A DNA stretch of 32,000 nucleotides from Paramicrosporidium saccamoebae KSL3 (lineage: Eukaryota; Fungi; Cryptomycota): positions 154,990 through 186,989 of the forward strand of contig MTSL01000178.1 of NCBI GenBank assembly GCA_002794465.1, written 5' to 3'. Shown here piece after piece: positions 1 to 25,228 of the stretch. Positions within the stretch are counted from its first letter, which is position 1, and each line of letters opens with the position of its first letter. The translations under genes and the position numbers were made by a program. The notes beneath the pieces were generated by a model. The model did no database searches. It was given only the letters and a program-made list of their open reading frames with translations, and was not told the DNA's origin.

Positions 1-1
1 G

Positions 2-490
2 AACAAGTCACGTGCCGAAGAATCCTTCACCCTGTTACTACTGGCCATTTTAGCCATTTCGGGAATCACGCAGGGGATTTTGGACATGGGTACGATTTTG
101 GGAATGCATCGGGTGTTTTCAGGTCTAACAGGCACTCCAAGGGCATTCTGGCTGTTGGGAATCTCCTCGGTGGTACTCAGTGTGCCGATGGTTCTTCTGA
201 CGACAAGACGGATAGCAAAGCCTCTGGGCGACATTGCGGCACTGGGGATGATGATGACAACAGCCGTGGAGCTGGGATGTTATCTACCGATGCAGGCGGC
301 CTTGTTCCTGGGATGGCCCATTAGTCCGGTGCTATGCAAATTACCCGCGGTGCTATTAGTAGCGTGGCTTGGTGGTCGCGGTATCCATCGGAGGACGGCC
401 TTGCAAGCGACATTGGCCGTGACTCTTTCCCCCATAATTGTTGTTTCGTTGGTAGCCCTTACTGCGTTCCTTGTTGCCATGTGGAGATGA
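2..490 (+). CDS. C-terminal part of a multi-pass membrane protein (5' end outside the window), family unassigned
   Basis: Frame is open from base 2 to TGA at 488-490 (NKSRAEESFTLLLLAILAISGITQGILDMG...VALTAFLVAMWR) with several hydrophobic helices. The TTG start in the ORF track is not a real start. Confidence 0.6.
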   Translation, partial: NKSRAEESFTLLLLAILAISGITQGILDMGTILGMHRVFSGLTGTPRAFWLLGISSVVLSVPMVLLTTRRIAKPLGDIAALGMMMTTAVELGCYLPMQAALFLGWPISPVLCKLPAVLLVAWLGGRGIHRRTALQATLAVTLSPIIVVSLVALTAFLVAMWR

Positions 491-686
491 TCCATGTTGA
501 GACGATGGAGCTTTGGTAATAGATGGACAAAGGGTACATTGTAAAATATGATAGACTAAAATACATAATATAAGTATGCCAATATTGACAGACCAGAGAG
601 AGAGATATAGTGCGAATGCTAATATGAGTATGGTGTTTAAGTGGAGGGAGACTTGATTAGATTGAGAGAAACATGATCAAGTAGAG

Positions 687-762
687 GACCTGATGAAACG
701 GAGGAAATTCTGATCAACTAGAAAGACCTGATTAAACAAAGAAAATTCTGATCAACTAGAAA
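687..762. repeat. Tandem duplication, 2 x 38 bp
   Basis: gacctgatgaaacggaggaaattctgatcaactagaaa (687-724) followed by gacctgattaaacaaagaaaattctgatcaactagaaa (725-762). Confidence 0.9.
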
Positions 763-834
763 GAAACAATTCATCTCCCATGTCATATAACACCACATAT
801 CGCATATCACAAACCAGCCGGGGTAGTCTTCAAT

Positions 835-1293
835 ATGACGGACAAGCTTATGATGTCGCTCGACGACATAATCAAAACCGAAAAGCCGCGTCACTCTGCC
901 TCACGCGGCCGTGCTGGACGTGGCCGTGGTGCTTCAAGGGGAGTGAGCAAGACACATTCGGTGCGCAGCCATACCGCTTCAAGACCCAACACCCGACCCA
1001 CCGACACTCGACGGGATAACCGTCCCGAAACTCGTCCGGTAAGCCGTCCAGTAGCCCGTCCAGCAACCCGTCAGACGACTCGTCCTCATACCGCCCAGCG
1101 ACCCTCAACTCAGCGACCTGTCCGTTCGCCGACAAAGAAGCAACAGAATTATGAAATCACCATTGTTAACGACCGCGCATCGGAAGCACCGACCTCGTAC
1201 CGCACAATGGACGTTTATCCCAGTCGACCCGCAGTAGAGCGATACCGTCCGCCGGTGACATATGGACATATGGAACAGATCCGCAAGCCTTAA
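835..1293 (+). CDS. ALYREF/Yra1/UIF-like mRNA export adaptor with N-terminal UAP56-binding motif and RG-rich region, no RRM
   Basis: MTDKLMMSLDDIIK matches the ALYREF/Yra1 N-terminal box (DKxDMSLDDII), followed by RGRAGRGRG and RPxx repeats. Confidence 0.65.
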   Translation: MTDKLMMSLDDIIKTEKPRHSASRGRAGRGRGASRGVSKTHSVRSHTASRPNTRPTDTRRDNRPETRPVSRPVARPATRQTTRPHTAQRPSTQRPVRSPTKKQQNYEITIVNDRASEAPTSYRTMDVYPSRPAVERYRPPVTYGHMEQIRKP

Positions 1294-1304
1294 TAAATTC
1301 GTTT

Positions 1305-2627
1305 CTATTTCTGCTTCTTCTTCTCCAATAGGGCCAATAGTTTTCGGACCTCAGTCATTGTAATGCCAATGGATGCGGCCACGGTGAGATAGGCGTGCGG
1401 ATAGGCCGTATGATGAGTCCCAAATGGCTGTCCCATTCGGACGAGACGCGCTCCCGAGACGGAACGATGGAATAGACGTGCGCCAAGCATATCGTCAGTT
1501 GGATCTACTACGAGGGCTATAGATATGTCATTGGAGGGTGTCTCCAAGACTCGATGGCTCAAGCAGAGTCCCTCCTTCAATGCCTTGAAACAGTCGATCC
1601 GTTGCTGCAATAATTGACGGTAACCAACGGCTCCCATGGACAGCAAGGTGATGAGCAGATCGAGAAGGGGTGAAATGCTGGCTCGGCCTGGATAGAGAGC
1701 AGCCACTTCGGCACAAAGGACGTCTGCTCCAAAGACAATCGATCCTCCAACGGGAACCATGAAATTCTTGTCGCTGCTCTGTATCACTGCCGTCACTAAA
1801 CCCCGACGGATGGCTTCATTTAGTTGCTTGGTGACAACATTGGATTGCAATCCGTAGGCATTGTTGACCACTTGGGGGATGGCGTAGAGCTGACACAATT
1901 CTCCAATTGCACATATATTGTCACAGCCTCGTGGTGCAAAGCAACTGCTGGTTGCCACCACTGCTGCAATATTTTCTGCGCCCAGACGGCCAATGGTTGT
2001 CTCGAGGGCATTCAAATCTGTACTCACTTGATCCCTCATCAGACAGTTCTCCACCACCACCAGTTCCAGTCCCGTAAAGCTGACACATTTCACACACGAT
2101 TTCTGGTCGATTCTCGGCATCAGTACATAGCGACTTTTGGGACGTCGAAGGGCTATTACTCGCAATACACAGGCCAATCCCATTCCTGTGGCTACCGGCA
2201 GCACTAGCACACCTCCCAACATTCCCAATTGTAGACCTGCCACCTTGATTGCCTGTTTCACCAGCTTGGTGGTAATAATCTGTATGAGGGAAGATCCGGG
2301 GGCTTTGGGCTGCACCTCTGTCAGTTCACCTGACCGGCCAATGCCATGGGCCAGACCAAAATGTCTTCTTTTCACGATTCCCGAGTATACTCGTCCTTCC
2401 CGCTCACCCGCTCCGCAAGAGTCTGGGTTGTTGTTTGCGTCCATGCATGCGAGCTTGTTTATAATAAACTCAATGGTGCTGTCATCGTATCCTTTTGAGG
2501 GCAGGGTCGGGTTGCCTAGAAAGTCCAGAAACAGCTTTTCCCGCTTCTCCACTGCCTGTCCCGCCTGTTGCAATACGCTCTCTCCACACTGGTCTAATTG
2601 ACTGCCAATAACTGTCTGTGCTCTCAT
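1305..2627 (-). CDS. SEPSECS: O-phosphoseryl-tRNA(Sec) selenium transferase (selenocysteine synthase, SepSecS)
   Basis: Diagnostic motifs GAGEREGRV, HGIGRSG, QPKAPGSS, LPVATGM, RIDQKSC, SCFAPR, VNNAYG, QSSDKNFMVPVGG (PLP lysine) and YPGRAS; 440 aa with no interruption. Confidence 0.97.
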   Translation of the reverse strand: MRAQTVIGSQLDQCGESVLQQAGQAVEKREKLFLDFLGNPTLPSKGYDDSTIEFIINKLACMDANNNPDSCGAGEREGRVYSGIVKRRHFGLAHGIGRSGELTEVQPKAPGSSLIQIITTKLVKQAIKVAGLQLGMLGGVLVLPVATGMGLACVLRVIALRRPKSRYVLMPRIDQKSCVKCVSFTGLELVVVENCLMRDQVSTDLNALETTIGRLGAENIAAVVATSSCFAPRGCDNICAIGELCQLYAIPQVVNNAYGLQSNVVTKQLNEAIRRGLVTAVIQSSDKNFMVPVGGSIVFGADVLCAEVAALYPGRASISPLLDLLITLLSMGAVGYRQLLQQRIDCFKALKEGLCLSHRVLETPSNDISIALVVDPTDDMLGARLFHRSVSGARLVRMGQPFGTHHTAYPHAYLTVAASIGITMTEVRKLLALLEKKKQK

Positions 2628-2665
2628 TGGCGGGATTACAATTAGTCGCCCTCCCCTTGTCAGCC

Positions 2666-4918
2666 ATGGAATTTGAACTCGGCAAATTGACGCCAGTCTC
2701 CGACACCACTGTCCATTCGGCCTTTTCCGACCATGCCCATTCTCCGCCCAAACGGGGACCCGGACGACCCCGCGGCAGCACTACTAAGAAGCTAAAAGCC
2801 CTCGAGGCCCTGTTTAATGACCCCAATATCATGGCGGCCGGCCGGAGGAGCACCAAGACCAGTCCCACCTTGGGCGAGGCCGAGACTACTGCCGAATTCC
2901 ATCGTGCCTGTCAGTATGGACAGGTTGGATTGGTCGACTCTATGGTGCGCAAGGACAAGGTCGATGTCAATTGTCGCGATTCCTCCCTCAATACTCCATT
3001 GCATGAGGCCGTCAGCCATAGACAGGTGCAGGTAGTCACCATGCTCCTCAAATTTGGTGCCGATCCTGAGGCCGAAAATATTATTGGAGAAAAGCCCGTC
3101 TCCCTCGCCGGTGTCCATGAAATTGTTGAGCTGTTGGCAGATTTTTCACAGTGCAGCAAAGAGGCCGAGGTTGAGTCGCTGTTTCGGTATTGTTGGCTGG
3201 GACAGATTTTAAATTTGCACAGGAAATGGATTGGCGACAATGAAGATGCAAACCTTGTTGACAAGAATGGCTCTACTGGCTTGCATTATGCAGCAATTAG
3301 AGATTATGCCCAGGTGGCCGGGATGCTAATCTCTGCCGGAATCGACATTAATGCGGCAAACAAGAAAGGAAACACGGCATTGCATGAGGCTTGTCGTTTC
3401 TCATCTCCCGAAACATTACGGCTCCTGCTCGAGGCGGGGGCCCTTTACTCCATTTTGAACAATTCTGGACACTCGCCCATTTATTATGCCAGCAAGGCCC
3501 TCCGAAGGGTGTTTCGGAAATTTGCCCGTGACAAGGGCATTGACGACCCCGATTTCCTTTTGGCAGCGAGTACTCAGCGCTATGTGGAAGTGTCCGAGGG
3601 CGATGCCGAGGAAGAAGACGAAGCGGAAGAGTCGGGTATAATGATTAATCATCGGTTGGGAGGGTTGACGAGGGAAGAACGGAAATTGCAGCAGATGTTG
3701 GCCATTTTCAGTAGGTCAGTGTCGGGTGAGGTGGAGGGGAAGCGGAAAAAGTTGTCGAATCGGTCTCGTCCTCAGAACAGCGGAATTGTGACTGAGGAGG
3801 AACTGACCCCGCCCAGGCCATCCAGACCAAGGAATCATGGCCGGCCGGTGAGAATAGATCCGACATATGTTGACAAGTCCTCCGGGAGGACACAACTTCA
3901 CAAATTTGCTGCTCGGGGGAAACTGACAGAAATTGCCGATTTATTAAAACTTGATGACAGTCTCATCCAGCGAACTGACAACGGCGGCTATTTGGCTTTG
4001 CATGAAGCCTGTCTCGGGGGACAGCTAGGGGCTGTGAAGGCTCTAATTGAAGCCGGTTCAAATATCAACGCCACCTCCAATAATGGCGATACGCCTCTGC
4101 ATGATGCAGTGGAAAATGTGCATGTGGATATTGTAAAATATTTATTGTCCAAAGGTGCCGATACCAAGGCAAAGAATAAGAATGGAGACCGACCCATTGA
4201 TGTTTCCAAAGATGCGCAAATAGTCGATATCCTACGGGGCACTAACAAGTTGTCTGACTTGGACTTTTATGATCCCGACTTCAAATCACGTGGCCGTAAG
4301 GCGCACAGCACAAAGTTGCACGACTCGAAGGAACCGAAAGAATCAAAGGAATCGAAAGATTTTGATTCTAAACCACCCGGCTCAGAGTCTGAGGAAACCG
4401 GGACACCCAGGAGATCATCTCGACGTGCTCCGATAGAGGCTGGTCTAGATAAGCTTTTTGGAAAGACAAATGGTCGCAAGATTATTGAAATTGTCACCAA
4501 TGAACCGCTGGTACAACTTCACTGTGGGGCCACCGATATGGAAAATGCTGGCTGGTACTACCTGGGGGCCCAAGCCGATGCCCTCTTCCAGAAATCCTTC
4601 CATCCTCTCCGTCTCCAAGACTCAGTGCCCCTCAGCAAACGGCGTCATCTCTCTCCCGAAGAGACGGACCGTCTGCTCGACTCTGCAATCGTCGACCGAC
4701 TCGGTAATTTCCGCAAATACTTGGTTGCTGATCCAATTCTCCTGACTAAAGAGTCGGTCCAACGGGCCTTTGACCGTGCAGGGGGTTCTCTGGCCAATGT
4801 TCCAGTGTTATATGCTGATCTGCAGCGATTGGCACGAAGGCCGGACGATGAGACGGCCCACCTCCCACCAAAGCTAAAGATGAAATGGCAGCGCAAGTCG
4901 GCAGAAAACCCGGCATAA
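2666..4918 (+). CDS. Ankyrin-repeat protein with N-terminal AT-hook (probably nuclear/chromatin; Hos4/ANKRD11/BCOR-like architecture)
   Basis: First ATG at 2666. KRGPGRPRGS AT-hook. Two ankyrin clusters (NTPLHEAV, STGLHYAA, NTALHEAC; RTQLHKFA, YLALHEAC, DTPLHDAV). Confidence 0.85.
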   Translation: MEFELGKLTPVSDTTVHSAFSDHAHSPPKRGPGRPRGSTTKKLKALEALFNDPNIMAAGRRSTKTSPTLGEAETTAEFHRACQYGQVGLVDSMVRKDKVDVNCRDSSLNTPLHEAVSHRQVQVVTMLLKFGADPEAENIIGEKPVSLAGVHEIVELLADFSQCSKEAEVESLFRYCWLGQILNLHRKWIGDNEDANLVDKNGSTGLHYAAIRDYAQVAGMLISAGIDINAANKKGNTALHEACRFSSPETLRLLLEAGALYSILNNSGHSPIYYASKALRRVFRKFARDKGIDDPDFLLAASTQRYVEVSEGDAEEEDEAEESGIMINHRLGGLTREERKLQQMLAIFSRSVSGEVEGKRKKLSNRSRPQNSGIVTEEELTPPRPSRPRNHGRPVRIDPTYVDKSSGRTQLHKFAARGKLTEIADLLKLDDSLIQRTDNGGYLALHEACLGGQLGAVKALIEAGSNINATSNNGDTPLHDAVENVHVDIVKYLLSKGADTKAKNKNGDRPIDVSKDAQIVDILRGTNKLSDLDFYDPDFKSRGRKAHSTKLHDSKEPKESKESKDFDSKPPGSESEETGTPRRSSRRAPIEAGLDKLFGKTNGRKIIEIVTNEPLVQLHCGATDMENAGWYYLGAQADALFQKSFHPLRLQDSVPLSKRRHLSPEETDRLLDSAIVDRLGNFRKYLVADPILLTKESVQRAFDRAGGSLANVPVLYADLQRLARRPDDETAHLPPKLKMKWQRKSAENPA

Positions 4919-12217: not shown

Positions 12218-13750
12218 TCATTGGGCCGACTCATCGCCAGACTTTAGAGCCGCATTCCTTTCGGCCTGCAGCGTACGGCACAGTTGCTCCAGTTTGGCCT
12301 TTTGCCCCCTTAGTGTCTCAAGGGCCGCATTCTGCTTCGTCCGCTCATCCGCCATTTCAATAATATTTCGACTCAACGTGGCGCATTTGCTATTCAGCTG
12401 GGCATTTTCGCGCTCGAGACGGGCAAGCTTGCCACCCATTGTTTCCATTTCGGCACGGAAGGTGCCAAAGAGATCGTTGCTCTTCCCGAGCGTCTCCTCC
12501 ACCTGACGGAACTTGTCTACATACTGACGCACCTGTGCCTTTAGTTCTTGTTCAGAACGCGTCAGCGCCGAGATGCGTCGGGTGCTATTTTCTAGGGAGG
12601 TCGTTTGCTTTGCCAGTTGGGTGGCCAGCAAGTCGGCTTTTTCTGTCGTGCAGAGGATGTCCACTTCACGCTGTCTAAGCTGCGCCCCAAAGTGCTCCTC
12701 CCTGGCATGGTAGAGCTCCGTCAAGGCGCTGATCCGATCAGAAAGTGTTGCAGAAGTTTCCTTTTCAAGAATTTCCTTTTCAGGAAGTGCGGGCAGAAGA
12801 AATTCCATTTTGATTTCGACACTGTGTTCGACTGGACGGACGCCTGTAGCAGCAGCGGCTGTAATGGCCGCCAACTCGTCTCGCCTGGCGCCCTCGGCCT
12901 TTATGCGACGATTTTCATTGTGAAGATCTCGACATAGTGACTCTAGACGGTGTTTGATGGCGTTGGCCTTGTCCAGCTCCATTTCTATGAGCTGACGCTG
13001 AATCCGTTCGTCCTGTGCAACCCTCGTGGCGGTATGCACCCGATGTCTCCAGTTCCGATCCTGTTTCACAAGCGTTGCAAATTTCTCCTTCAGGGCCTCC
13101 AACTTTAGCTTGCTTGCCAATTGGGGACTAGCAAGCACATTGAGGGCCGCATCCAGTTCGGCCTCCATTTTGGTCACCAGTTCATAGTCCACTGAAGAAG
13201 GCGGATGGACCTCTTTTTCGCCATCCAGCAAAACTTCCTCCACCTCCTCCTCTATCTCAAAACATTCACTGCCGCTCACCTCAAATTCAAAATCAACGCC
13301 ATCCTCAAATTCGTCGTCAAAGGCCTCTCCCTCTCCGGGGAATGCCAACGCACTGCGTTTTCCACGGATGACGCCGCCAAAGTAGCTTTTAGCAAGATTT
13401 GCCAATGACGAGGTTGGCGTTGATGTGGGTGCTGTTGCTCCATACAGCTGTTGTCGCACCTCACTGAGACGCTTTTTAAGCGACTGAAGAGAAAGCTCCG
13501 TCTTGGTGGCCGCGTTCATTGTGGTGGGGAACGGCTGTTCGCGTTGGAGAAGATATCGGTCCTGGTCTAGACGTTCCAGCTGTTGCTGAAGGGCCAGTAG
13601 ACGTGGCGAAAGTTCCTCCTCCAAGGTGGGCACCTCAGTCTCACCATCGAGCGACAGATTATCAAGGGCCGCAGGGAGACTGGGATGGGCGGCGGTGGGG
13701 GGAGCAGGCTGTGTGGTTGTCGTCTTTTTGCTCTTTTTCCCCTTTGCCAT
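12218..13750 (-). CDS. Taxilin-family coiled-coil protein
   Basis: KHRLESLCRDLHNENRRIK, YVDKFRQVEETLGKSNDLFGTFRAEMETM and KLEQLCRTLQAER are typical taxilin motifs. Confidence 0.9.
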   Translation of the reverse strand: MAKGKKSKKTTTTQPAPPTAAHPSLPAALDNLSLDGETEVPTLEEELSPRLLALQQQLERLDQDRYLLQREQPFPTTMNAATKTELSLQSLKKRLSEVRQQLYGATAPTSTPTSSLANLAKSYFGGVIRGKRSALAFPGEGEAFDDEFEDGVDFEFEVSGSECFEIEEEVEEVLLDGEKEVHPPSSVDYELVTKMEAELDAALNVLASPQLASKLKLEALKEKFATLVKQDRNWRHRVHTATRVAQDERIQRQLIEMELDKANAIKHRLESLCRDLHNENRRIKAEGARRDELAAITAAAATGVRPVEHSVEIKMEFLLPALPEKEILEKETSATLSDRISALTELYHAREEHFGAQLRQREVDILCTTEKADLLATQLAKQTTSLENSTRRISALTRSEQELKAQVRQYVDKFRQVEETLGKSNDLFGTFRAEMETMGGKLARLERENAQLNSKCATLSRNIIEMADERTKQNAALETLRGQKAKLEQLCRTLQAERNAALKSGDESAQ

Positions 13751-13888
13751 GTTCCTAGTAGGTGCGCTATAGTCGGTTCAAAGGTTCTAGTGATAGCGCA
13801 AAAAAGACCGGGGCTCGTCTCCCTGCACCGTGTTCTCTTGGGCCTACCACGGCCCTTCAGACACGGGAAATCTAGTTATTGTATATTA

Positions 13889-15366
13889 CTAAATAAGACA
13901 AGTCTTGATGTCTCTCGCATACACAGCTGCTTTCTGATCCGTAAGTGATGACAAGACTGGCCTGTGCTGATTGGTCAGCACCAGAGGCTGACTTGGGAAT
14001 ATCGTCGCAATTTGGTTGCCGAGTTCATGTTTTGCCAGCGCATTAATCTGCTCATGGACCCAGCTGGCGCCTTCGTAATCTGATTTAAACGTCTTCTTCC
14101 GCTTTGTGTAGGCACGGGCAATGTCGTGCATGGCTGGAGGCAAATATTTCACTGCCCGCTCTGAAATGTCGAGTACCATGACGGCGGCAGCGCCTGGCAT
14201 GAGCGTCTCTATTTTGGAAGCATCTGGACTGGGACGTACAAGGTCTTCAGCCACCCGGTCTGGGTCTAGGTCAGCAAGGACACCTATCGAGGGCGAGCAG
14301 TCGTTCTTGTAATCAATCCTCATGGCTGAGTCTACGTGTCCGGACATTAAATTCACCACTCCAACAGCGGAACGTAAAAATGATACAACACTCTCGTGGG
14401 TCTTTTTGGGTCTTTCACGTGACAATTTCAACAGAGTTGACTGAAAGTTGCGATGCACAGGGGGAAAGTGCTCTTTCATAAAGTGTTGTAAGAAGTCTTT
14501 GAATTTATGCACATCAATTTGATGACGTTCAACATTCATCATTTCTGCCGTCGTCTGCTTGCAATACGCAGGCCAGAGTGAGCTGTAGCTACCAAAGGGC
14601 ATGGCGGGCAAATAGTCATTACCTGAAAATGCAGTCAGTAAGGCGAAATCCAGCCGCCATTGCGCATCGGGTCGTCCCTGGGCCTGTTCCCGGAGTATCC
14701 GGGTGCAATGTTCCACGTCAAAGTTGCCAAAACGACTTTCGGGCTCCCAAGTTGGAAGCATTACGTGCATACGAGGAATACCATTGATGATGGACTGCAC
14801 ATAGGTATCACTGTCAAGTGCAACAATTGCCCGACTGACATTGGGGTTCGTGAGGGCGGACTGGCGAATTTCTTCAAACATTTTAAACTCGCCCTCGCCA
14901 GGACAGGATGCGCCACTGATGATGACTTTGGGAGAACGGGTGATGCCATCCAGGACAAGTCCCTTGATGAACTCTTCGAATCGGGTCATGAAGATGCAGC
15001 CCGGAGTGAATTGCTGGGAATCAAAATTACCGGTTCGCTTTGCTGACCAGGCATTGTCGACACGCCGTTTCCGTTGCTCGTCTAGCTTGGAAAACGATGC
15101 TGGCCCATCGAGGGTCAAGTAGAGTGTCTGCTCCGGGTGGTAGATTCGTGTCATGGCCTTTAATTTGGCACTGACATGTCGATACAGGGCTTGCTCATTG
15201 CGGACGACTCGTGCGCTTGAATGAAGCAAGGAATTGAGGTCTACATACACTTCGTCAAATGAATTCCTAAAATGATGACGTCATACAGCGGATACTTTGG
15301 CTCGGGGCGAGTAAAGGCGGCCTTGTAGGTTCCCTTCAGCCATTTGGTGAAGCCTCTCACTCCCAT
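13889..15366 (-). CDS. Compact XRN-family 5'-3' exoribonuclease
   Basis: ATG at 15366, 29-nt intron 15267-15295, giving MGVRGFTKWL...FDEVYVDLNSLLH. Further motifs LDGPASFSKLDEQRKRR, FDSQQFTPG, PGEGEFK, LDSD and GNDYLP; about 480 aa. Confidence 0.88.
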
Positions 15367-15456: not shown

Positions 15457-16281
15457 ATGTCGATTACGCTCAGTGGAACTCCCACTAACGACGCTATAGC
15501 CCGACTGGCCGCGTGTCTGACAAAGCTGCAGGAACAAATGGAACGAATGGCACAGATGCAGTCCGAGTCGACCCTGATGGTCAGTCGACTAAGCGGGGCA
15601 GTATTGAGACTTTCTCAAGAGATGGCTGATGGTAAGAATCGCATAGCTGGCCTGGAGGAACGACAAAAGAAGAGACGGAAGACGGACGGACTGCTGATTC
15701 CCAGTTTTGGTTTTGATAATCCCTCGTTGACTCCGACCATCAATCCCACCAGTCTGGCGGCGGATGTGAATGACATTCTGGGCCCACTGGTGCCAAGGAC
15801 GGCACGGGTTTTGGTGGTGGAGGATGATGTTGCCTATCAGTGGCTCGTCAGCAAGAATCTGGAGGCTAAAGGCTTAAATTGCACGCTGGCCCAGACTGCC
15901 GAAGAGGCGCTCATGTTTCTACAACACGCCTCCTTTGATCTGATCTTGATGGACATTTACCTGCCGGGTGGAATCAGCGGTCTAGATACGGCACGTCGCA
16001 TTCGAGCATTCGACTCTGTCACGCCGATTGTCAGCATGACCTCTGCCACTACTCCCCGTCAGATTGCATCCTATTTGGCAGGCGGAATGAATGATGTCCT
16101 TCCTAAACCCTTCTCCAAGGACGGTCTGCTGGGTCTGGTGTCACGGTTCTGTGCGTTGGATCTGGGTGAAAAGGGAAAGGGTCCGATTGAAGAGATTTTC
16201 TCCGATGACATTTTGGATGATGTGGGCACTTCTAGTTCTAGTGGCCGAGGAAGTACCTTTATGTTTGGGCCGCACTTGTAA
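15457..16281 (+). CDS. Response regulator with Skn7/Prr1-type receiver domain and N-terminal coiled coil
   Basis: VLVVEDD, DLILMDI (phospho-Asp), IRAFDSVTPIVSMT and GMNDVLPKPF closely resemble the Skn7 receiver; basic KKRRK patch. Confidence 0.88.
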   Translation: MSITLSGTPTNDAIARLAACLTKLQEQMERMAQMQSESTLMVSRLSGAVLRLSQEMADGKNRIAGLEERQKKRRKTDGLLIPSFGFDNPSLTPTINPTSLAADVNDILGPLVPRTARVLVVEDDVAYQWLVSKNLEAKGLNCTLAQTAEEALMFLQHASFDLILMDIYLPGGISGLDTARRIRAFDSVTPIVSMTSATTPRQIASYLAGGMNDVLPKPFSKDGLLGLVSRFCALDLGEKGKGPIEEIFSDDILDDVGTSSSSGRGSTFMFGPHL

Positions 16282-22658: not shown

Positions 22659-23075
22659 TTAGTCAGACCAGTCATCGTCATCATCGCTTTCAGTATCTAC
22701 AAGGTACTTGCGTCTGTTGGCCAAGGCAGACTGAATAGAATTTTGGGTACTACTCACTGGCTTTTCCGCTTTTCCCGCGGCCTTTAACTTTTTGCCCTCT
22801 CTGATTTGACCCAGCAAGTCATCGCGGCCGTCTGGAGCATAGCTTTGTTCCATTTGAGACAAGGGTGGAGGAGGGGGAGGTAGCGATACTGGAGGGGGTG
22901 GAGGCGGAGGAGGGATACGATTCATTGGTGGTGGCGGGGGGACCCGAGATTGGGGTGTTGATGGGAATACATCTTGCCGTAGATGGACCAAGTCACCCGC
23001 AGCCTCAAAATTGTCCTGTACAGGATCTGTGCTGACCAAACACCAAAGTAATGCGAGTTGCAGAGTCAATTTCAT
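22659..23075 (-). CDS. Putative secreted WASP/WAVE-like protein: signal peptide + polyproline + WH2 + Central + Acidic (VCA)
   Basis: MKLTLQLALLWCLVST signal-like N-terminus; three polyproline runs; GRDDLLGQIREGKKLK (WH2); SIQSALANRRKYL (C helix); ESDDDDDWSD* (acidic tail with Trp). Confidence 0.85.
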   Translation of the reverse strand: MKLTLQLALLWCLVSTDPVQDNFEAAGDLVHLRQDVFPSTPQSRVPPPPPMNRIPPPPPPPPVSLPPPPPPLSQMEQSYAPDGRDDLLGQIREGKKLKAAGKAEKPVSSTQNSIQSALANRRKYLVDTESDDDDDWSD

Positions 23076-23101
23076 TACTGATGCATCTAATTCACAGGAT
23101 G

Positions 23102-23111
23102 CTTATATAAA
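23102..23111. promoter_or_regulatory. Palindromic TATA element in the divergent promoter of the two VCA genes
   Basis: CTTATATAAG is a perfect 10-bp palindrome giving TATATAA on both strands, in the 134-bp gap between ATG 23075 (-) and ATG 23210 (+). Confidence 0.5.
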
Positions 23112-23209
23112 GTTTTTGGATCATTGGTTGGTTGAAATATACAAAGTTGCTGATTGGCCGAAATGATGTAAACAGAAGCTATATCAGGGTCTCGTGGGTC
23201 TATACCATC

Positions 23210-24940
23210 ATGATGGTGCTCAATCTTGCCATTCTCCTGTCAATGCTATGTGTGCAGTCCAATGCCGCGTACACGGAACAAGACATGCAAGATGCGTTGA
23301 ACCTGGGAGCAATCTGCAATCCCCATGTTCTGCCTCTTGCCCTCGGCCGTTCGGGGGTAGACGGTCACGAGCGCAAATTAATGGCCTGCCACTTAATGGG
23401 GGACCATAAATGTGCCATGAAGGCGCTAAGAAAGTTAGAAAAGGTTGTGCCCGAATCGGTACTGTTAGAAAAGTACCGAGCGTTAGCTACTGGCACACAA
23501 GATGTCTATCCGATTACGCAGAGCGAAACGGGCAGAGCAGTTTTTAAAGCGATTGGAGAAGGAAACAATGAAGCGGCCTTTGGTATTCTCGCAGCGAATA
23601 ATGAAGGCCATGAGGACTTGTGGCTGGCAGTAACATTGGCATCATATCCTGGAATGTATTTTAATAGAGTCACCGATCAAGTGCTGGCGACTGGTGACGT
23701 TAGGAAGGATAAATTCCTTGCTGACGCAGTGCGTATGATATCTCAATTATCAGATGAACAGCTCACTCAACGCTATAAAGAGCTGAAAGGACAGCTTAGC
23801 GAGGAGATGGCAAGGAAAGAAATGTATGCGCATGCAGCAGCAGGAAAGCTGGAATTGGCAGGAAAGTATGCCAAGATGGTGACAAGTGGGCCATATGCCG
23901 AGGATGCAGCCCGACTCCGTGGAGCATCTCTCCTGTGTTCGTCCAAGTACGACAAGGCATTCCAAGTGTTCTCTGATGTGATTAACGCAAGATATGGTGG
24001 AGACAATGCAGCGGCACCTAGAGTGATACAACATGGCCTGTATTTGGCACAAAAGAAACCAGATCTGACCGCTGTTGGTGCATTGGCAGAACATGCCATT
24101 GCATCCGGAGTGGTAACTGATGTTCCTGGATTTCCAGCAGTCTCCCAATTCACATATCAAGCGGCGTCTGGGCCAATATCGAGCGGACCGACGATGGGTA
24201 TTCCCCCGCCACCCCCAATGACCCGTATCCCACCACCACCACCACCACCAATGAATCGTATCCCTCCTCCGCCTCCATTGACACAACCCGCCCCTATCTA
24301 TGCCTCTCCACCAAATTTCTCATCCGAAGATTTGCAGTTTGCACGCTCTACCCTGCGAGGCACACCAACAATGGAAAAGCCAACGAGCGGCCGACCATCG
24401 ATGGCCGAACTCCTTAGCGGGGCCAGAAATCTACGTCCCATTACGTCTAACCAGCCAGTAGTACCTCCCCGTAGTGGGTTGGAATCTACTCTCAGCGAAG
24501 GATTTGACAGGATGGCAAGTCAGTTTCGTTCTCAGCCACTCGACTCTGAGTTGACCTCATCTGATGATGACGACGACGACTGGGACACTAGTCCTGGAGA
24601 TGATTATGGCTCGGGATTCACGCCACTACAGTACTCTCCACCGCCTGCTTATGCGCAACCACCAATACAGTCTGTTTATGAACAACCACCAGTACAGCCT
24701 GCTTATGTGCAGCCATCGGTGCAGCCTTCTTATGCACAGCCCTCAACTGCGCATTCGATCTTTGGAGAACGAGTACGTCGTGCAGCACCTCGAGTGGCAC
24801 CACAAGTAGTTCCAACACAGCAGACATCCCCATTTGGTGCTACGCTGAATCGTGTGCAGCAGCCTGCGCCTATAGAGGCCCCAGTAAAGCAAGGACGTGC
24901 CAAGGGGTTTTCAAATATTAGAAATATGTTTGGCGGCTGA
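23210..24940 (+). CDS. Putative secreted protein: signal peptide, helical (TPR-like) domain, polyproline, WH2-like motifs, C/A region and Pro/Gln/Tyr-rich tail
   Basis: MMVLNLAILLSMLCVQSNA|AY signal peptide; PPPPPMTRIPPPPPPPMNRIPPPPP; SSEDLQFARSTLRGT and GRPSMAELLSGARNLRPI WH2-like; GLESTLSEGFDRMASQF C-like; SSDDDDDDWD acidic. Confidence 0.8.
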   Translation: MMVLNLAILLSMLCVQSNAAYTEQDMQDALNLGAICNPHVLPLALGRSGVDGHERKLMACHLMGDHKCAMKALRKLEKVVPESVLLEKYRALATGTQDVYPITQSETGRAVFKAIGEGNNEAAFGILAANNEGHEDLWLAVTLASYPGMYFNRVTDQVLATGDVRKDKFLADAVRMISQLSDEQLTQRYKELKGQLSEEMARKEMYAHAAAGKLELAGKYAKMVTSGPYAEDAARLRGASLLCSSKYDKAFQVFSDVINARYGGDNAAAPRVIQHGLYLAQKKPDLTAVGALAEHAIASGVVTDVPGFPAVSQFTYQAASGPISSGPTMGIPPPPPMTRIPPPPPPPMNRIPPPPPLTQPAPIYASPPNFSSEDLQFARSTLRGTPTMEKPTSGRPSMAELLSGARNLRPITSNQPVVPPRSGLESTLSEGFDRMASQFRSQPLDSELTSSDDDDDDWDTSPGDDYGSGFTPLQYSPPPAYAQPPIQSVYEQPPVQPAYVQPSVQPSYAQPSTAHSIFGERVRRAAPRVAPQVVPTQQTSPFGATLNRVQQPAPIEAPVKQGRAKGFSNIRNMFGG

Positions 24941-25005: not shown

Positions 25006-25089
25006 AGATTTGAGATTTGAGACTCGAAGTTTGAGATCCGAGATTTGAGATTCGAGTTTTGAGACTCGAGGTTTGAGATCCAAGATTCA
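25006..25089. repeat. 7-bp microsatellite-like array (AGATTTG variants, about 12 copies)
   Basis: agatttg agatttg agactcg aagtttg agatccg agatttg agattcg ... Confidence 0.85.
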
Positions 25090-25092
25090 TCG

Positions 25093-25176
25093 ACTCATAA
25101 ATTCGTCAATTCATCCACTCATAAGCTCGTCGATTCATCCACTCATAAACTCGTCAATTCCCCCACTCATAAACTC
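25093..25176. repeat. Minisatellite, about 3.5 x 24 bp
   Basis: actcataaattcgtcaattcatcc units at 25093, 25117, 25141 and a partial copy at 25165. Confidence 0.9.
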
Positions 25177-25228
25177 ACTAAAGTTATTCTTCACAAACAC
25201 ACAAAACCATGGTTTATTATGAAACAAC

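Follow-up and report, generated by a model that had tools for sequence, protein, structure and literature searches.

A putative secreted WASP-like protein with a new helical N-terminal domain in the intranuclear parasite Paramicrosporidium saccamoebae

Paramicrosporidium saccamoebae is an intranuclear parasite of Saccamoeba, and one locus in its genome raises the question of whether a eukaryotic parasite may mimic the WASP family of actin regulators. Pathogenic bacteria and viruses are known to mimic that family; to our knowledge no eukaryotic parasite is known to do so, and the literature that we searched contained no such case. Nothing on an Arp2/3 complex or WASP protein of the parasite's own was found in the P. 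saccamoebae genome paper, its supplements or a 2026 GTPase survey, and the genome paper makes no mention of actin or secreted proteins. Canonical Microsporidia are without Arp2/3 and WASP proteins (PMC3298513).

The window that we analysed is a 32-kb stretch with which contig MTSL01000178.1 ends. Within it, positions 23210-24940 (+ strand) are a complete coding sequence for 576 amino acids plus stop, identical to the NCBI gene model, with ATG at 23210 as start codon and 24938-24940 as stop. An earlier, sequence-only reading of this DNA had ended the gene at 24600, which is too short; because the reading frame extends to 24938-24940, the acidic-Trp motif of the protein is internal and stands 118 residues before the C-terminus. 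The open reading frame and the order of its motifs are established. A host or contaminant contig was considered and rejected, the gene density being parasite-like and the synteny common to two environmental relatives.

The protein starts with a signal-peptide-like segment, MMVLNLAILLSMLCVQSNA (23210-23266, +), with predicted cleavage SNA|AY. This segment has the highest hydrophobicity in the protein, of which it is the sole strongly hydrophobic stretch, and by inspection it has n, h and c regions with a 13-residue hydrophobic core, and Ser at -3 and Ala at -1 in agreement with the -3/-1 rule. Equivalent segments begin all four homologues described below (P0004, P0005, P0008 and P0007). As to a possible anchoring of the protein to the parasite surface or nuclear envelope by its N-terminal domain, which the sequence-only reading had proposed, the sequence shows no transmembrane segment, GPI-type tail or ER-retention motif; its last residues (NMFGG) are not hydrophobic and do not resemble KDEL. 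The signal peptide proposed in the sequence-only reading stands as a rule-based prediction. Secretion itself, also claimed there, is probable; what supports it are the sequence rules, the conservation of the signal peptide and conserved cysteines.

The next part of the protein, residues 20-305 (23267-24124, +), is predicted to be an all-alpha solenoid. A single-sequence AF2 model of the full protein (pLDDT 42.9, used for secondary structure only) was all-helical from residue 20 to about 305, i.e., over about 285 residues, and AF2 with a 4-sequence alignment modelled the domain with 15 helices, a pLDDT of 82 and a pTM of 0.78. Cys36 and Cys243 are invariant in the alignment of this domain, and Cys60 and Cys68 are retained in four of five aligned sequences. 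Foldseek returned only TPR/PPR solenoids as top matches, all with E ≥ 0.15 and the best with a TM score of 0.32. The top Pfam match was TPR_14 (E = 0.08), whose 14.1 bits fall short of the cut-off of 23.5; no Pfam TPR model reached its gathering score on the large protein, and residues 212-266 matched a single TPR protein in phmmer. Searched as a profile against the PDB, the domain gave a chance match only and no sequence relatives, and a BFVD search found no relative. The domain thus resembles TPR/PPR solenoid proteins in its all-helical hairpin repeats, but differs from them in falling below the Pfam TPR cut-offs, in its insignificant Foldseek scores and in having no sequence relatives in the PDB. 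Modelling and structural search, which the sequence-only reading had put forward as a check, gave a helical fold with no significant structural relative, and its description of a novel, helical, TPR-like N-terminal domain was upheld, with a resemblance at the level of the class. Kinship with the SPIN90/Dip1-type solenoid activators of Arp2/3 was also considered and rejected, these being absent from the Foldseek matches.

Relatives of this domain came from metagenomes. Word-indexed searches with the whole protein or the N-terminal domain returned the self-match or nothing, whereas exhaustive phmmer searches found a family consisting of the large protein and three other metagenomic clusters, P0004 (E = 1.4e-18), P0005/P0008 (1.2e-6 for P0005) and P0007 (5.4e-6). 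Its five sequences are 23-31% identical, and all have a signal-peptide-like segment followed by a helical domain of about 285 residues with invariant Cys36, PL, LLTGD, AAKYAK, LC and LAQ; conserved motifs of the solenoid of the large protein are LLTGD, AAKYAK and LAQK. On these alignments, a new N-terminal domain family is established. Two scans of JGI metagenomes for a closer orthologue, above all the gene expected just past the end of contig L002, found nothing.

Members of the family differ in what follows the solenoid. P0004, which is 31-34% identical to the large protein, has the same order of signal peptide, domain, polyproline, WH2, C and acidic-Trp. P0005, a syntenic orthologue (with CysRS, RNR small subunit, trehalase, WD40 and Dus genes), keeps the solenoid and has no polyproline or acidic-Trp, and P0007 keeps the solenoid without any WCA. 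Because P0005 has neither polyproline nor acidic-Trp, it is the N-terminal domain, and not the WCA, that stays constant across the family, and because P0005 and P0007 lack all or part of the WCA, the WCA is not the family's conserved function. The large protein also diverges fast, being 26.5% identical to P0005 when the flanking genes are 49-81% identical, a pattern typical of host-interaction genes.

The tail of the large protein opens with three polyproline tracts, PPPPPMTRIPPPPPPPMNRIPPPPP (24203-24277, +, coordinates that begin just after the first Ile), found by a six-frame motif scan and translation. In WASP-family proteins and formins, XPPPPP tracks are ligands of profilin (PMC5753033), and the tracts of the large protein, which are of this kind, may also bind it. 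The runs, whose presence agrees with the sequence-only reading, contain five, seven and five prolines (P5/P7/P5) at residues 332-356, ahead of both WH2-like motifs, and the proline-rich region stands directly before the VCA region, as in class I nucleation-promoting factors (NPFs; Kollmar et al. 2012, PMC3298513).

Two WH2-like motifs had been proposed here; both are weak, and direct searches detected neither as a WH2. Motif 2, MAELLSGARNLRPI (residues 398-411; 24401-24442, +), is the best WH2 candidate, a degenerate one: it fits about five of the ten specified positions of the published WH2 pattern, has the correct 4-residue linker, and matches the P0004 WH2 column by column in alignments, as it does, by hhalign, the WH2 of the small neighbouring gene. 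A pattern of WH2 spacing, written post hoc with the sequence already seen, matched the large protein once, at motif 2, along with three positive controls; 54 of 20,000 shuffles also matched it, as did two sites in 13,000 background residues. Motif 1, EDLQFARSTLRGT (residues 373-385; 24326-24364, +), is non-canonical in alignments and fails both the WH2 pattern and Pfam WH2; its EDL...L..[TV] is conserved in P0004, and residues 372-380 form a helix in a low-confidence AF2 model. Pfam WH2 (PF02205) gave no match to the whole protein or to the excised peptides even at E ≤ 10, and phmmer with the large protein against the PDB found no WH2 protein; a WH2 of the class I NPF type is not found in it. 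Because just one segment fits the WH2 pattern, and that one is degenerate, the suggestion of tandem WH2 motifs with Arp2/3-independent nucleation is unsupported.

A C-like amphipathic helix, LESTLSEGFDRMASQF (residues 424-439; 24479-24526, +), follows, and its helicity, claimed earlier, is predicted by the AF2 model at residues 426-436. The C domain pattern consists of three large hydrophobic residues spaced by three, an R/K doublet or triplet and a hydrophobic residue (PMC3298513); here L424, L428 and F432 keep that spacing and precede D-R-M, with a single Arg and no basic doublet. The core of the helix, [IL][EQ]S[AT]L, is common to the small neighbour and P0004. Next comes an acidic region with Trp, SSDDDDDDWDT (24557-24589, +; six-frame scan and translation), in which DDDDDDW occupies 24563-24583 and the Trp is W458. 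The SSDDDDDDW of the sequence-only reading is present, in an internal rather than a C-terminal position, and the region aligns with DSDGDNDDWAT of P0004, which is likewise internal. In six frames of the window, an acidic run followed by W occurs in this gene and its neighbour only. Chance low complexity was rejected, since within the window the motif is confined to these two adjacent genes and the motif order is identical.

Profiles relate this tail to known WCA modules. The WH2 of P0004 matches N-WASP at E = 1.6e-5 (Pfam WH2, E = 0.015), and a two-sequence profile of the large protein and P0004 finds N-WASP V-C-A with E-values of 7.6e-7 and 2.6e-5; the latter match, to 6uhc_H, compares with E = 0.24 for P0004 alone. 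When a WCA HMM was built without the large protein, the C-A region of the latter outscored 1993 of 2000 shuffles. By these comparisons, the tail is homologous to WCA modules.

The neighbour is a small gene on the opposite strand (22659-23075, -), encoding 138 amino acids with signal peptide, polyproline, WH2, C and acidic-Trp. Its canonical WH2 (22773-22826, -) clears Pfam WH2 (24.9 bits; cut-off 23.1) and matches the WH2 of N-WASP at E = 3.7e-8, and C (22698-22736, -) and acidic-Trp (22662-22691, -) follow. An orthologue in L002, a related metagenomic organism, is 67% identical and also keeps a signal-peptide-like segment; dN/dS is 0.17 for the gene as a whole and drops to 0.07 in the WCA, which on this measure is under strong purifying selection.

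Several observations link the two genes. Inverted DNA matches between them (I1/I6/I5/I4) occur in the same order, so that the motifs are collinear, and hhalign aligned the two proteins from WH2 to C with P = 0.005 and one gap. BLASTP between them gave nothing, because of composition adjustment, and a Smith-Waterman comparison excluding polyproline and acidic runs was not significant, 381 of 1000 shuffles reaching the score. One arm of a 42-nt inverted repeat (24236-24277, +) is 95% identical to 22899-22940 in the small gene and encodes PPPPMNRIPPPPP in both genes; because the orthologue of the small gene in L002 has MSQHRIPP in its place, gene conversion within P. saccamoebae is suggested. The genes diverge from a shared promoter of 134 bp (23076-23209) with two ATTGG (CCAAT) boxes and TATA-like elements. 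A 166-nt alignment across this spacer shows 79% identity to L002 with the boxes invariant, so by this alignment the promoter is conserved, and we propose that the two genes are co-regulated from a bidirectional promoter conserved in a related species. The small protein resembles the large one in its paralogous tail, the 42-nt stretch, collinear motifs, promoter and signal peptide, and differs in having no solenoid and no tail after the acidic region, in its canonical WH2, C and A, and in an A region that is C-terminal. The claim that the large protein is NPF-like and paralogous to the small partner holds for architecture and homology (collinear motifs, P0004 and the profile match), and its WH2 is degenerate and its C has a single Arg, where those of the partner are canonical.

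Compared with WASP/N-WASP, WAVE, WASH and WHAMM/JMY, the large protein shares the order of proline-rich region, WH2-type motif, C helix and acidic-Trp. It differs from these class I NPFs by its signal peptide, by an N-terminal domain unrelated to WH1, SHD or WAHD, by a WH2 that is degenerate and undetectable alone, by a C in which a lone Arg takes the place of the basic doublet or triplet, and by an internal A region with 118 residues after it; neither the subfamily-specific N-terminal domain nor the cytosolic location of class I NPFs is indicated. Baculovirus P78/83, Rickettsia RickA, Listeria ActA and Burkholderia thailandensis BimA offer a likeness in the PRR/WH2/CA module, presumably for host Arp2/3, a likeness that rests on architecture and published descriptions rather than sequence comparison. 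P78/83 drives Arp2/3-dependent nuclear F-actin (10.1101/248278), and its producer, like P. saccamoebae, replicates inside the host nucleus. Unlike these bacterial and viral mimics, the large protein has a eukaryotic producer, a relative of Microsporidia, and an ER-type signal peptide, and by sequence it looks soluble rather than capsid- or surface-anchored. With Spire, Cordon-bleu, VopL/VopF (Vibrio) and TARP (Chlamydia) it shares two WH2-like segments 25 residues apart after a proline-rich stretch, but these nucleators have two or more bona fide WH2 motifs, whereas the large protein has one WH2-spaced segment, none that Pfam WH2 detects, and no evident oligomerisation domain.

The reading that we prefer, and to which we give an even chance, is that the large protein is a secreted, fast-evolving, putative host-directed actin/Arp2/3 effector, a variant of WASP mimicry by pathogens and possibly the first case of a eukaryotic parasite mimicking a WASP-type actin regulator. 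We infer secretion, host location, binding to actin and Arp2/3, an activating effect and a role for the solenoid as follows. A soluble protein would be exported through the parasite's classical secretory pathway to the amoeba nucleus, or to the cytoplasm during entry. Its folded, TPR-class alpha-solenoid would most likely be a protein-binding or targeting module. The disordered tail would be built like a WASP-family NPF, with profilin-type polyproline, degenerate WH2, C helix, acidic-Trp and a further conserved tail, and would engage host profilin-actin and the Arp2/3 complex of the host, with the solenoid determining where the protein acts. The partner of the large protein in this would be the small WCA protein, which is co-regulated and fully canonical. 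More tentatively, we consider it possible that the two form a secreted, co-regulated pair of WASP mimics, one a minimal canonical WCA and the other solenoid-anchored, that builds Arp2/3-branched actin in, or en route to, the host nucleus.

A pairwise similarity to the small partner that is not significant outside the polyproline and acidic runs, and a WCA that is not the conserved function of the family, weigh against the preferred reading. What else counts against it (no WH2 match of its own, a C without basic doublet and an internal acidic-Trp, atypical for class I NPFs) counts for another, which we judge unlikely: that the large protein is a secreted effector of the solenoid family whose WCA-like tail is a decayed paralogue no longer activating Arp2/3. 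Its effect would then come from the solenoid and from short linear motifs (polyproline, PPxY and FG), or it would sequester or compete for Arp2/3 or profilin and so modulate the small canonical NPF without nucleation of its own. That P0005 and P0007 keep the solenoid with the acidic-Trp or the entire WCA missing, and that the conserved extra tail bears FG and PPxY motifs, fits such a protein. Decay is harder to reconcile with a V-C-A order and spacing still like those of P0004 and of the small partner, with an intact DDDDDDW and hydrophobic C pattern, and with a polyproline stretch held identical to that of an active-looking partner through apparent gene conversion.

A structural protein of the parasite's own spore wall or polar filament, secreted and with incidental low complexity in place of WCA features, seems improbable to us. 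Microsporidia offer a parallel in PTP1/PTP2, adjacent genes for proline-rich proteins with signal peptides; the Pro-rich region and signal peptide of the large protein, its Tyr-rich 9-residue repeats, its fast divergence and its position next to another signal-peptide gene would all suit such a role, and the polar-filament proteins of P. saccamoebae are not yet identified (PMC5701793). Against it stand the Pfam and N-WASP matches of the small-partner WH2 and the strong purifying selection on that WCA, as well as a collinearity of polyproline, V, C and A and a P0004 WH2 that are hard to explain by chance. Pfam reports no family for the whole large protein, polar-tube families included, and we know of no polar tube protein with a 285-residue solenoid. 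Very improbable is an endogenous cytoplasmic actin regulator, i.e., a divergent WASP/Las17-like NPF whose hydrophobic N-terminus is not a functional signal peptide: PRR-VCA order is a hallmark of cellular WASP-family proteins (PMC3298513) and P. saccamoebae retains many ancestral fungal genes, but a signal-peptide-like segment persists in five of five family sequences despite their low identity and in the small partner's orthologue, cysteines are conserved, Pfam found no WH1, SHD, WAHD, GBD or other WASP-family N-terminal domain in the large protein, and its evolution is far faster than that of neighbouring genes.

If both genes are active, they would offer a concrete way into the question of how microsporidia-like parasites deal with the host nucleus, a natural tool to make nuclear actin, and an effector family in which a conserved folded domain carries a swapped, host-mimicking tail. 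Were the pair of mimics real, mimicry of actin nucleation would be on record for a eukaryotic pathogen for the first time, baculovirus P78/83 would have a cellular counterpart, and the solenoid family would serve short-branch Microsporidia as a modular effector scaffold, carrying interchangeable host-mimicking linear motifs (WH2, CA, polyproline, PPxY and FG). Whatever it does, the solenoid represents a new domain family that is well modelled and has no structural relative.

The sequence-only reading had overlooked the last 118 residues, a basic tail rich in Pro, Gln and Tyr (24584-24937, +), which we characterized by repeat search, residue counts and alignment with P0004. Pfam returned nothing relevant for it. 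The tail contains about four 9-residue repeats with a 27-nt period (24640-24741), one PPxY (PPAY, residue 478), three FG dipeptides (518, 542 and 574) and a basic-aromatic motif at its end, and the positions TP, PF and K.R.K.F.N are conserved with the tail of P0004.

The large gene is real: it runs from an ATG at window position 23210 to a stop at 24938-24940 on the + strand, encodes 576 residues and equals the deposited gene model. The sequence-only reading had placed its end at 24600 and therefore missed 118 residues; the acidic-Trp motif that it described is present but internal, not terminal, since the ORF continues for those 118 residues. The 32-kb window, the final part of contig MTSL01000178.1 (assembly GCA_002794465.1), also carries genes for SepSecS, MetRS, CysRS, the RNR small subunit, trehalase and Dus; its gene complement and gene density are consistent with the P. 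saccamoebae genome. Paramicrosporidium saccamoebae, one of the Rozellomycota ("short-branch Microsporidia"), lives as a parasite in the nucleus of the amoeba Saccamoeba, and its spores have been described as bearing a polar filament; Rozellomycota in general are said to grow within the host as naked protoplasts.

Residues 20 to about 305 were all-helical in AlphaFold predictions. A single-sequence model was poor (pLDDT 43, about 17 helices); with a four-sequence family alignment, pLDDT was 82 and pTM 0.78, with 15 helices. A Foldseek search of the latter model against PDB gave no match at E<0.1 (best E=0.15, TM 0.32), the top matches all being TPR or PPR solenoids. Pfam returned nothing above threshold for the large protein (best TPR_14, E=0.08), a PDB sequence-profile search with the N-domain gave a chance match only, and a BFVD search gave nothing. 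phmmer, run exhaustively with the large protein against 1.8 billion representatives, found four other proteins: the metagenomic P0004 (665 aa as called, E=1.4e-18), P0005 (613 aa, E=1.2e-6; P0008 is nearly identical to it) and P0007 (434 aa, E=5.4e-6), and also P0006, a bona fide TPR protein that matches residues 212-266 repeatedly. The earlier description of this domain as helical, TPR-like and unrecognised thus holds at the level of class, and the domain, new by these searches, founds a very small family. Its members share the motifs LLTGD, AAKYAK and LAQ(K), with Cys36 and Cys243 invariant and Cys60 and Cys68 present in four of five aligned sequences. On metagenomic contig L003 (813-1061), P0004 was called with an 83-residue Cys-rich N-terminal extension, almost certainly a gene-calling artefact; its family-type signal peptide begins at an internal Met (MRLDYSAVSLLVAVTATAYG).

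Beyond residue ~305 the single-sequence model was disordered except for short helices at 372-380 and 426-436. This tail contains three polyproline tracts (24203-24277, +), motif 1 (EDLQFARSTLRGT, residues 373-385), motif 2 (MAELLSGARNLRPI, residues 398-411), a C-like helix (LESTLSEGFDRMASQF, residues 424-439) and, after it, the acidic-Trp motif SSDDDDDDW458. In all six frames of the whole window, an acidic run beside Trp occurred only in the large gene and its adjacent small partner. The basic, P/Q/Y-rich tail that follows (24584-24937, +) has four 9-residue repeats, one PPxY (PPAY, 478) and three FG dipeptides, at least three of which arose in 60 of 20000 shuffles; its basic-aromatic C-terminus is conserved with P0004. 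That the FG motifs of this intranuclear parasite's protein might contact nuclear transport factors is pure speculation.

The proposed likeness of the tail to nucleation-promoting factors (NPFs) was supported by indirect tests but not by direct ones. Pfam WH2 gave no match at E<=10 with the whole protein or excised peptides, phmmer against PDB found no WH2 protein, and pairwise similarity to the small partner was not significant when polyproline and acidic runs were left out. P0004, in which polyproline, an EDL-motif, RNAALLDDIKRGTKLHHVEK, ILESAL..., DSDGDNDDW and a tail follow in the same order, has a WH2 that matches N-WASP (E=1.6e-5) and Pfam WH2 (E=0.015). In the MAFFT alignment, motif 2 falls column for column on this WH2, while the C-like helix lies opposite ILESAL and the acidic-W opposite DNDDW. 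A two-sequence profile of the large protein and P0004 matched N-WASP constructs (E=7.6e-7) and, across WH2-C-A, the full N-WASP of cryo-EM entry 6uhc, an NPF-Arp2/3 structure (E=2.6e-5, versus 0.24 for P0004 alone). With hhalign, profiles of the small-partner WCA module and the large protein paired DGRDDLLGQIREGKKLKAAGKAEKP...IQSALA with SGRPSMAELLSGARNLRPITSNQP...LESTLS (one gap, P=0.005), and a WCA HMM built without the large protein scored it above 1993 of 2000 shuffles, aligning C-A only. A canonical-spacing WH2 pattern, written after the sequence was seen, occurred in the large protein only at 398-411, in three control WH2s and in 0.27% of shuffles. Compared with the WASP-family definition (PMC3298513), the WH2 agrees at about half of the specified positions, the C motif carries the three spaced hydrophobics and a single Arg where a doublet is expected, and the A region is non-terminal. 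Motif 1, by these comparisons, is a conserved motif and no WH2, so that the suggestion of tandem WH2 motifs is unsupported.

The divergent small partner (138 aa, 22659-23075, −) has the order signal peptide, polyproline, WH2, C and A, with a Pfam WH2 score of 24.9 bits (cut-off 23.1) and an N-WASP match at E=3.7e-8. A full orthologue, 67% identical, lies at 118-528 of L002, a contig of a related organism from JGI metagenome 3300042204, in synteny with CysRS, whose C-terminus is 91% identical to that of P. saccamoebae. Between the orthologues dN/dS was 0.17 overall and about 0.07 in the WCA, rough values because dS is saturated; the small-partner WCA is evidently under strong purifying selection. 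Both genes share a 134-bp bidirectional promoter spacer (23076-23209). A 166-nt alignment spanning it with L002 (1-117) was 79% identical, with two ATTGG (CCAAT) boxes and TATA-like elements invariant; L002 stops 20 bp short of the expected large-gene start. A 42-nt inverted repeat (22899-22940 versus 24236-24277), its arms 95% identical, codes for PPPPMNRIPPPPP in each gene of the divergent pair, and the L002 small orthologue differs at that position, suggesting that these paralogues have recently undergone gene conversion in P. saccamoebae. Additional short inverted matches were collinear along the pair.

On L004, a Logan contig from a more distant relative, the syntenic orthologue P0005 lies in a conserved gene order, CysRS, P0005, RNR small subunit, trehalase, WD40, Dus; the small gene is absent, P0005 directly following CysRS (1-3142). 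Identity to L004 was 81% for the RNR small subunit, 67% for Dus, 58% for the CysRS C-terminus, 51% for WD40, 49% for trehalase and 26.5% for the large protein. P0005 retains the "EDLAAIRRQLRPV" and "ALQFKKV" motifs and lacks polyproline and acidic-W, which makes the WCA tail lineage-specific within the family. P0007, from an unrelated genomic context, also lacks a WCA; the solenoid is therefore constant and the tail variable. Among the solenoid family, only P. saccamoebae and the P0004 organism have a WCA-type tail.

Residues 1-19 (MMVLNLAILLSMLCVQSNA), the sole strongly hydrophobic segment, resemble a signal peptide with Ser at −3 and Ala at −1, and all solenoid-family members begin in this way. 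This conserved start, the conserved cysteines and the absence from the large protein of a second hydrophobic segment or a retention or GPI-like C-terminus together argue, by inference, for a soluble exported protein. With about even confidence, we read it as a host-directed effector whose WASP-mimic tail, jointly with the canonical small partner, would engage host profilin-actin and Arp2/3 as WASP does, the solenoid supplying targeting or scaffolding. An effector acting through other motifs, its tail decayed and non-activating, seems unlikely: the negative direct tests would suit it, the V-C-A order and spacing kept in common with P0004 and the small partner would not. More improbable is a structural protein of the spore or polar filament. 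An endogenous cytosolic NPF would explain the WCA-like order, and is very improbable given that its signal peptide would have to be false throughout the family. For a host-directed WASP mimic, baculovirus P78/83 offers a precedent, Arp2/3-driven nuclear F-actin produced by an intranuclear pathogen (10.1101/248278); canonical Microsporidia are without Arp2/3 and WASP proteins (PMC3298513). A literature search found no link of Paramicrosporidium, Rozellomycota or Microsporidia to secreted WH2/WCA proteins, and actin, secretion and effectors go unmentioned in the P. saccamoebae genome paper. Pathogen WASP mimicry is already known; what we propose as new are its putative occurrence in a eukaryotic parasite and the domain family that accompanies it.

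Elsewhere in the window, a clear SepSecS (selenocysteine synthase) gene at 1305-2627 (−; Pfam E=8e-114) implies selenocysteine machinery in this fungus-related parasite; no tRNA genes were found within the 32 kb. The deposited 981-residue model at 12218-15250 (−), which begins as an XRN_N exonuclease and continues as a Taxilin coiled-coil, covers two distinct ORFs (12218-13750 and 13889-15250), perhaps because two genes were merged in the model or because the gene contains an intron. A 274-residue protein at 15457-16281 (+) has a bacterial-type response-regulator receiver domain (PF00072, precomputed annotation). Finally, in the 288 bp that separate the large gene from the convergent RNR small-subunit gene lie two tandem-repeat arrays (25006-25184), one with a 14-nt period and about 4-5 copies, the other with 8- and 24-nt periods and the repeated motif CTCATAA.
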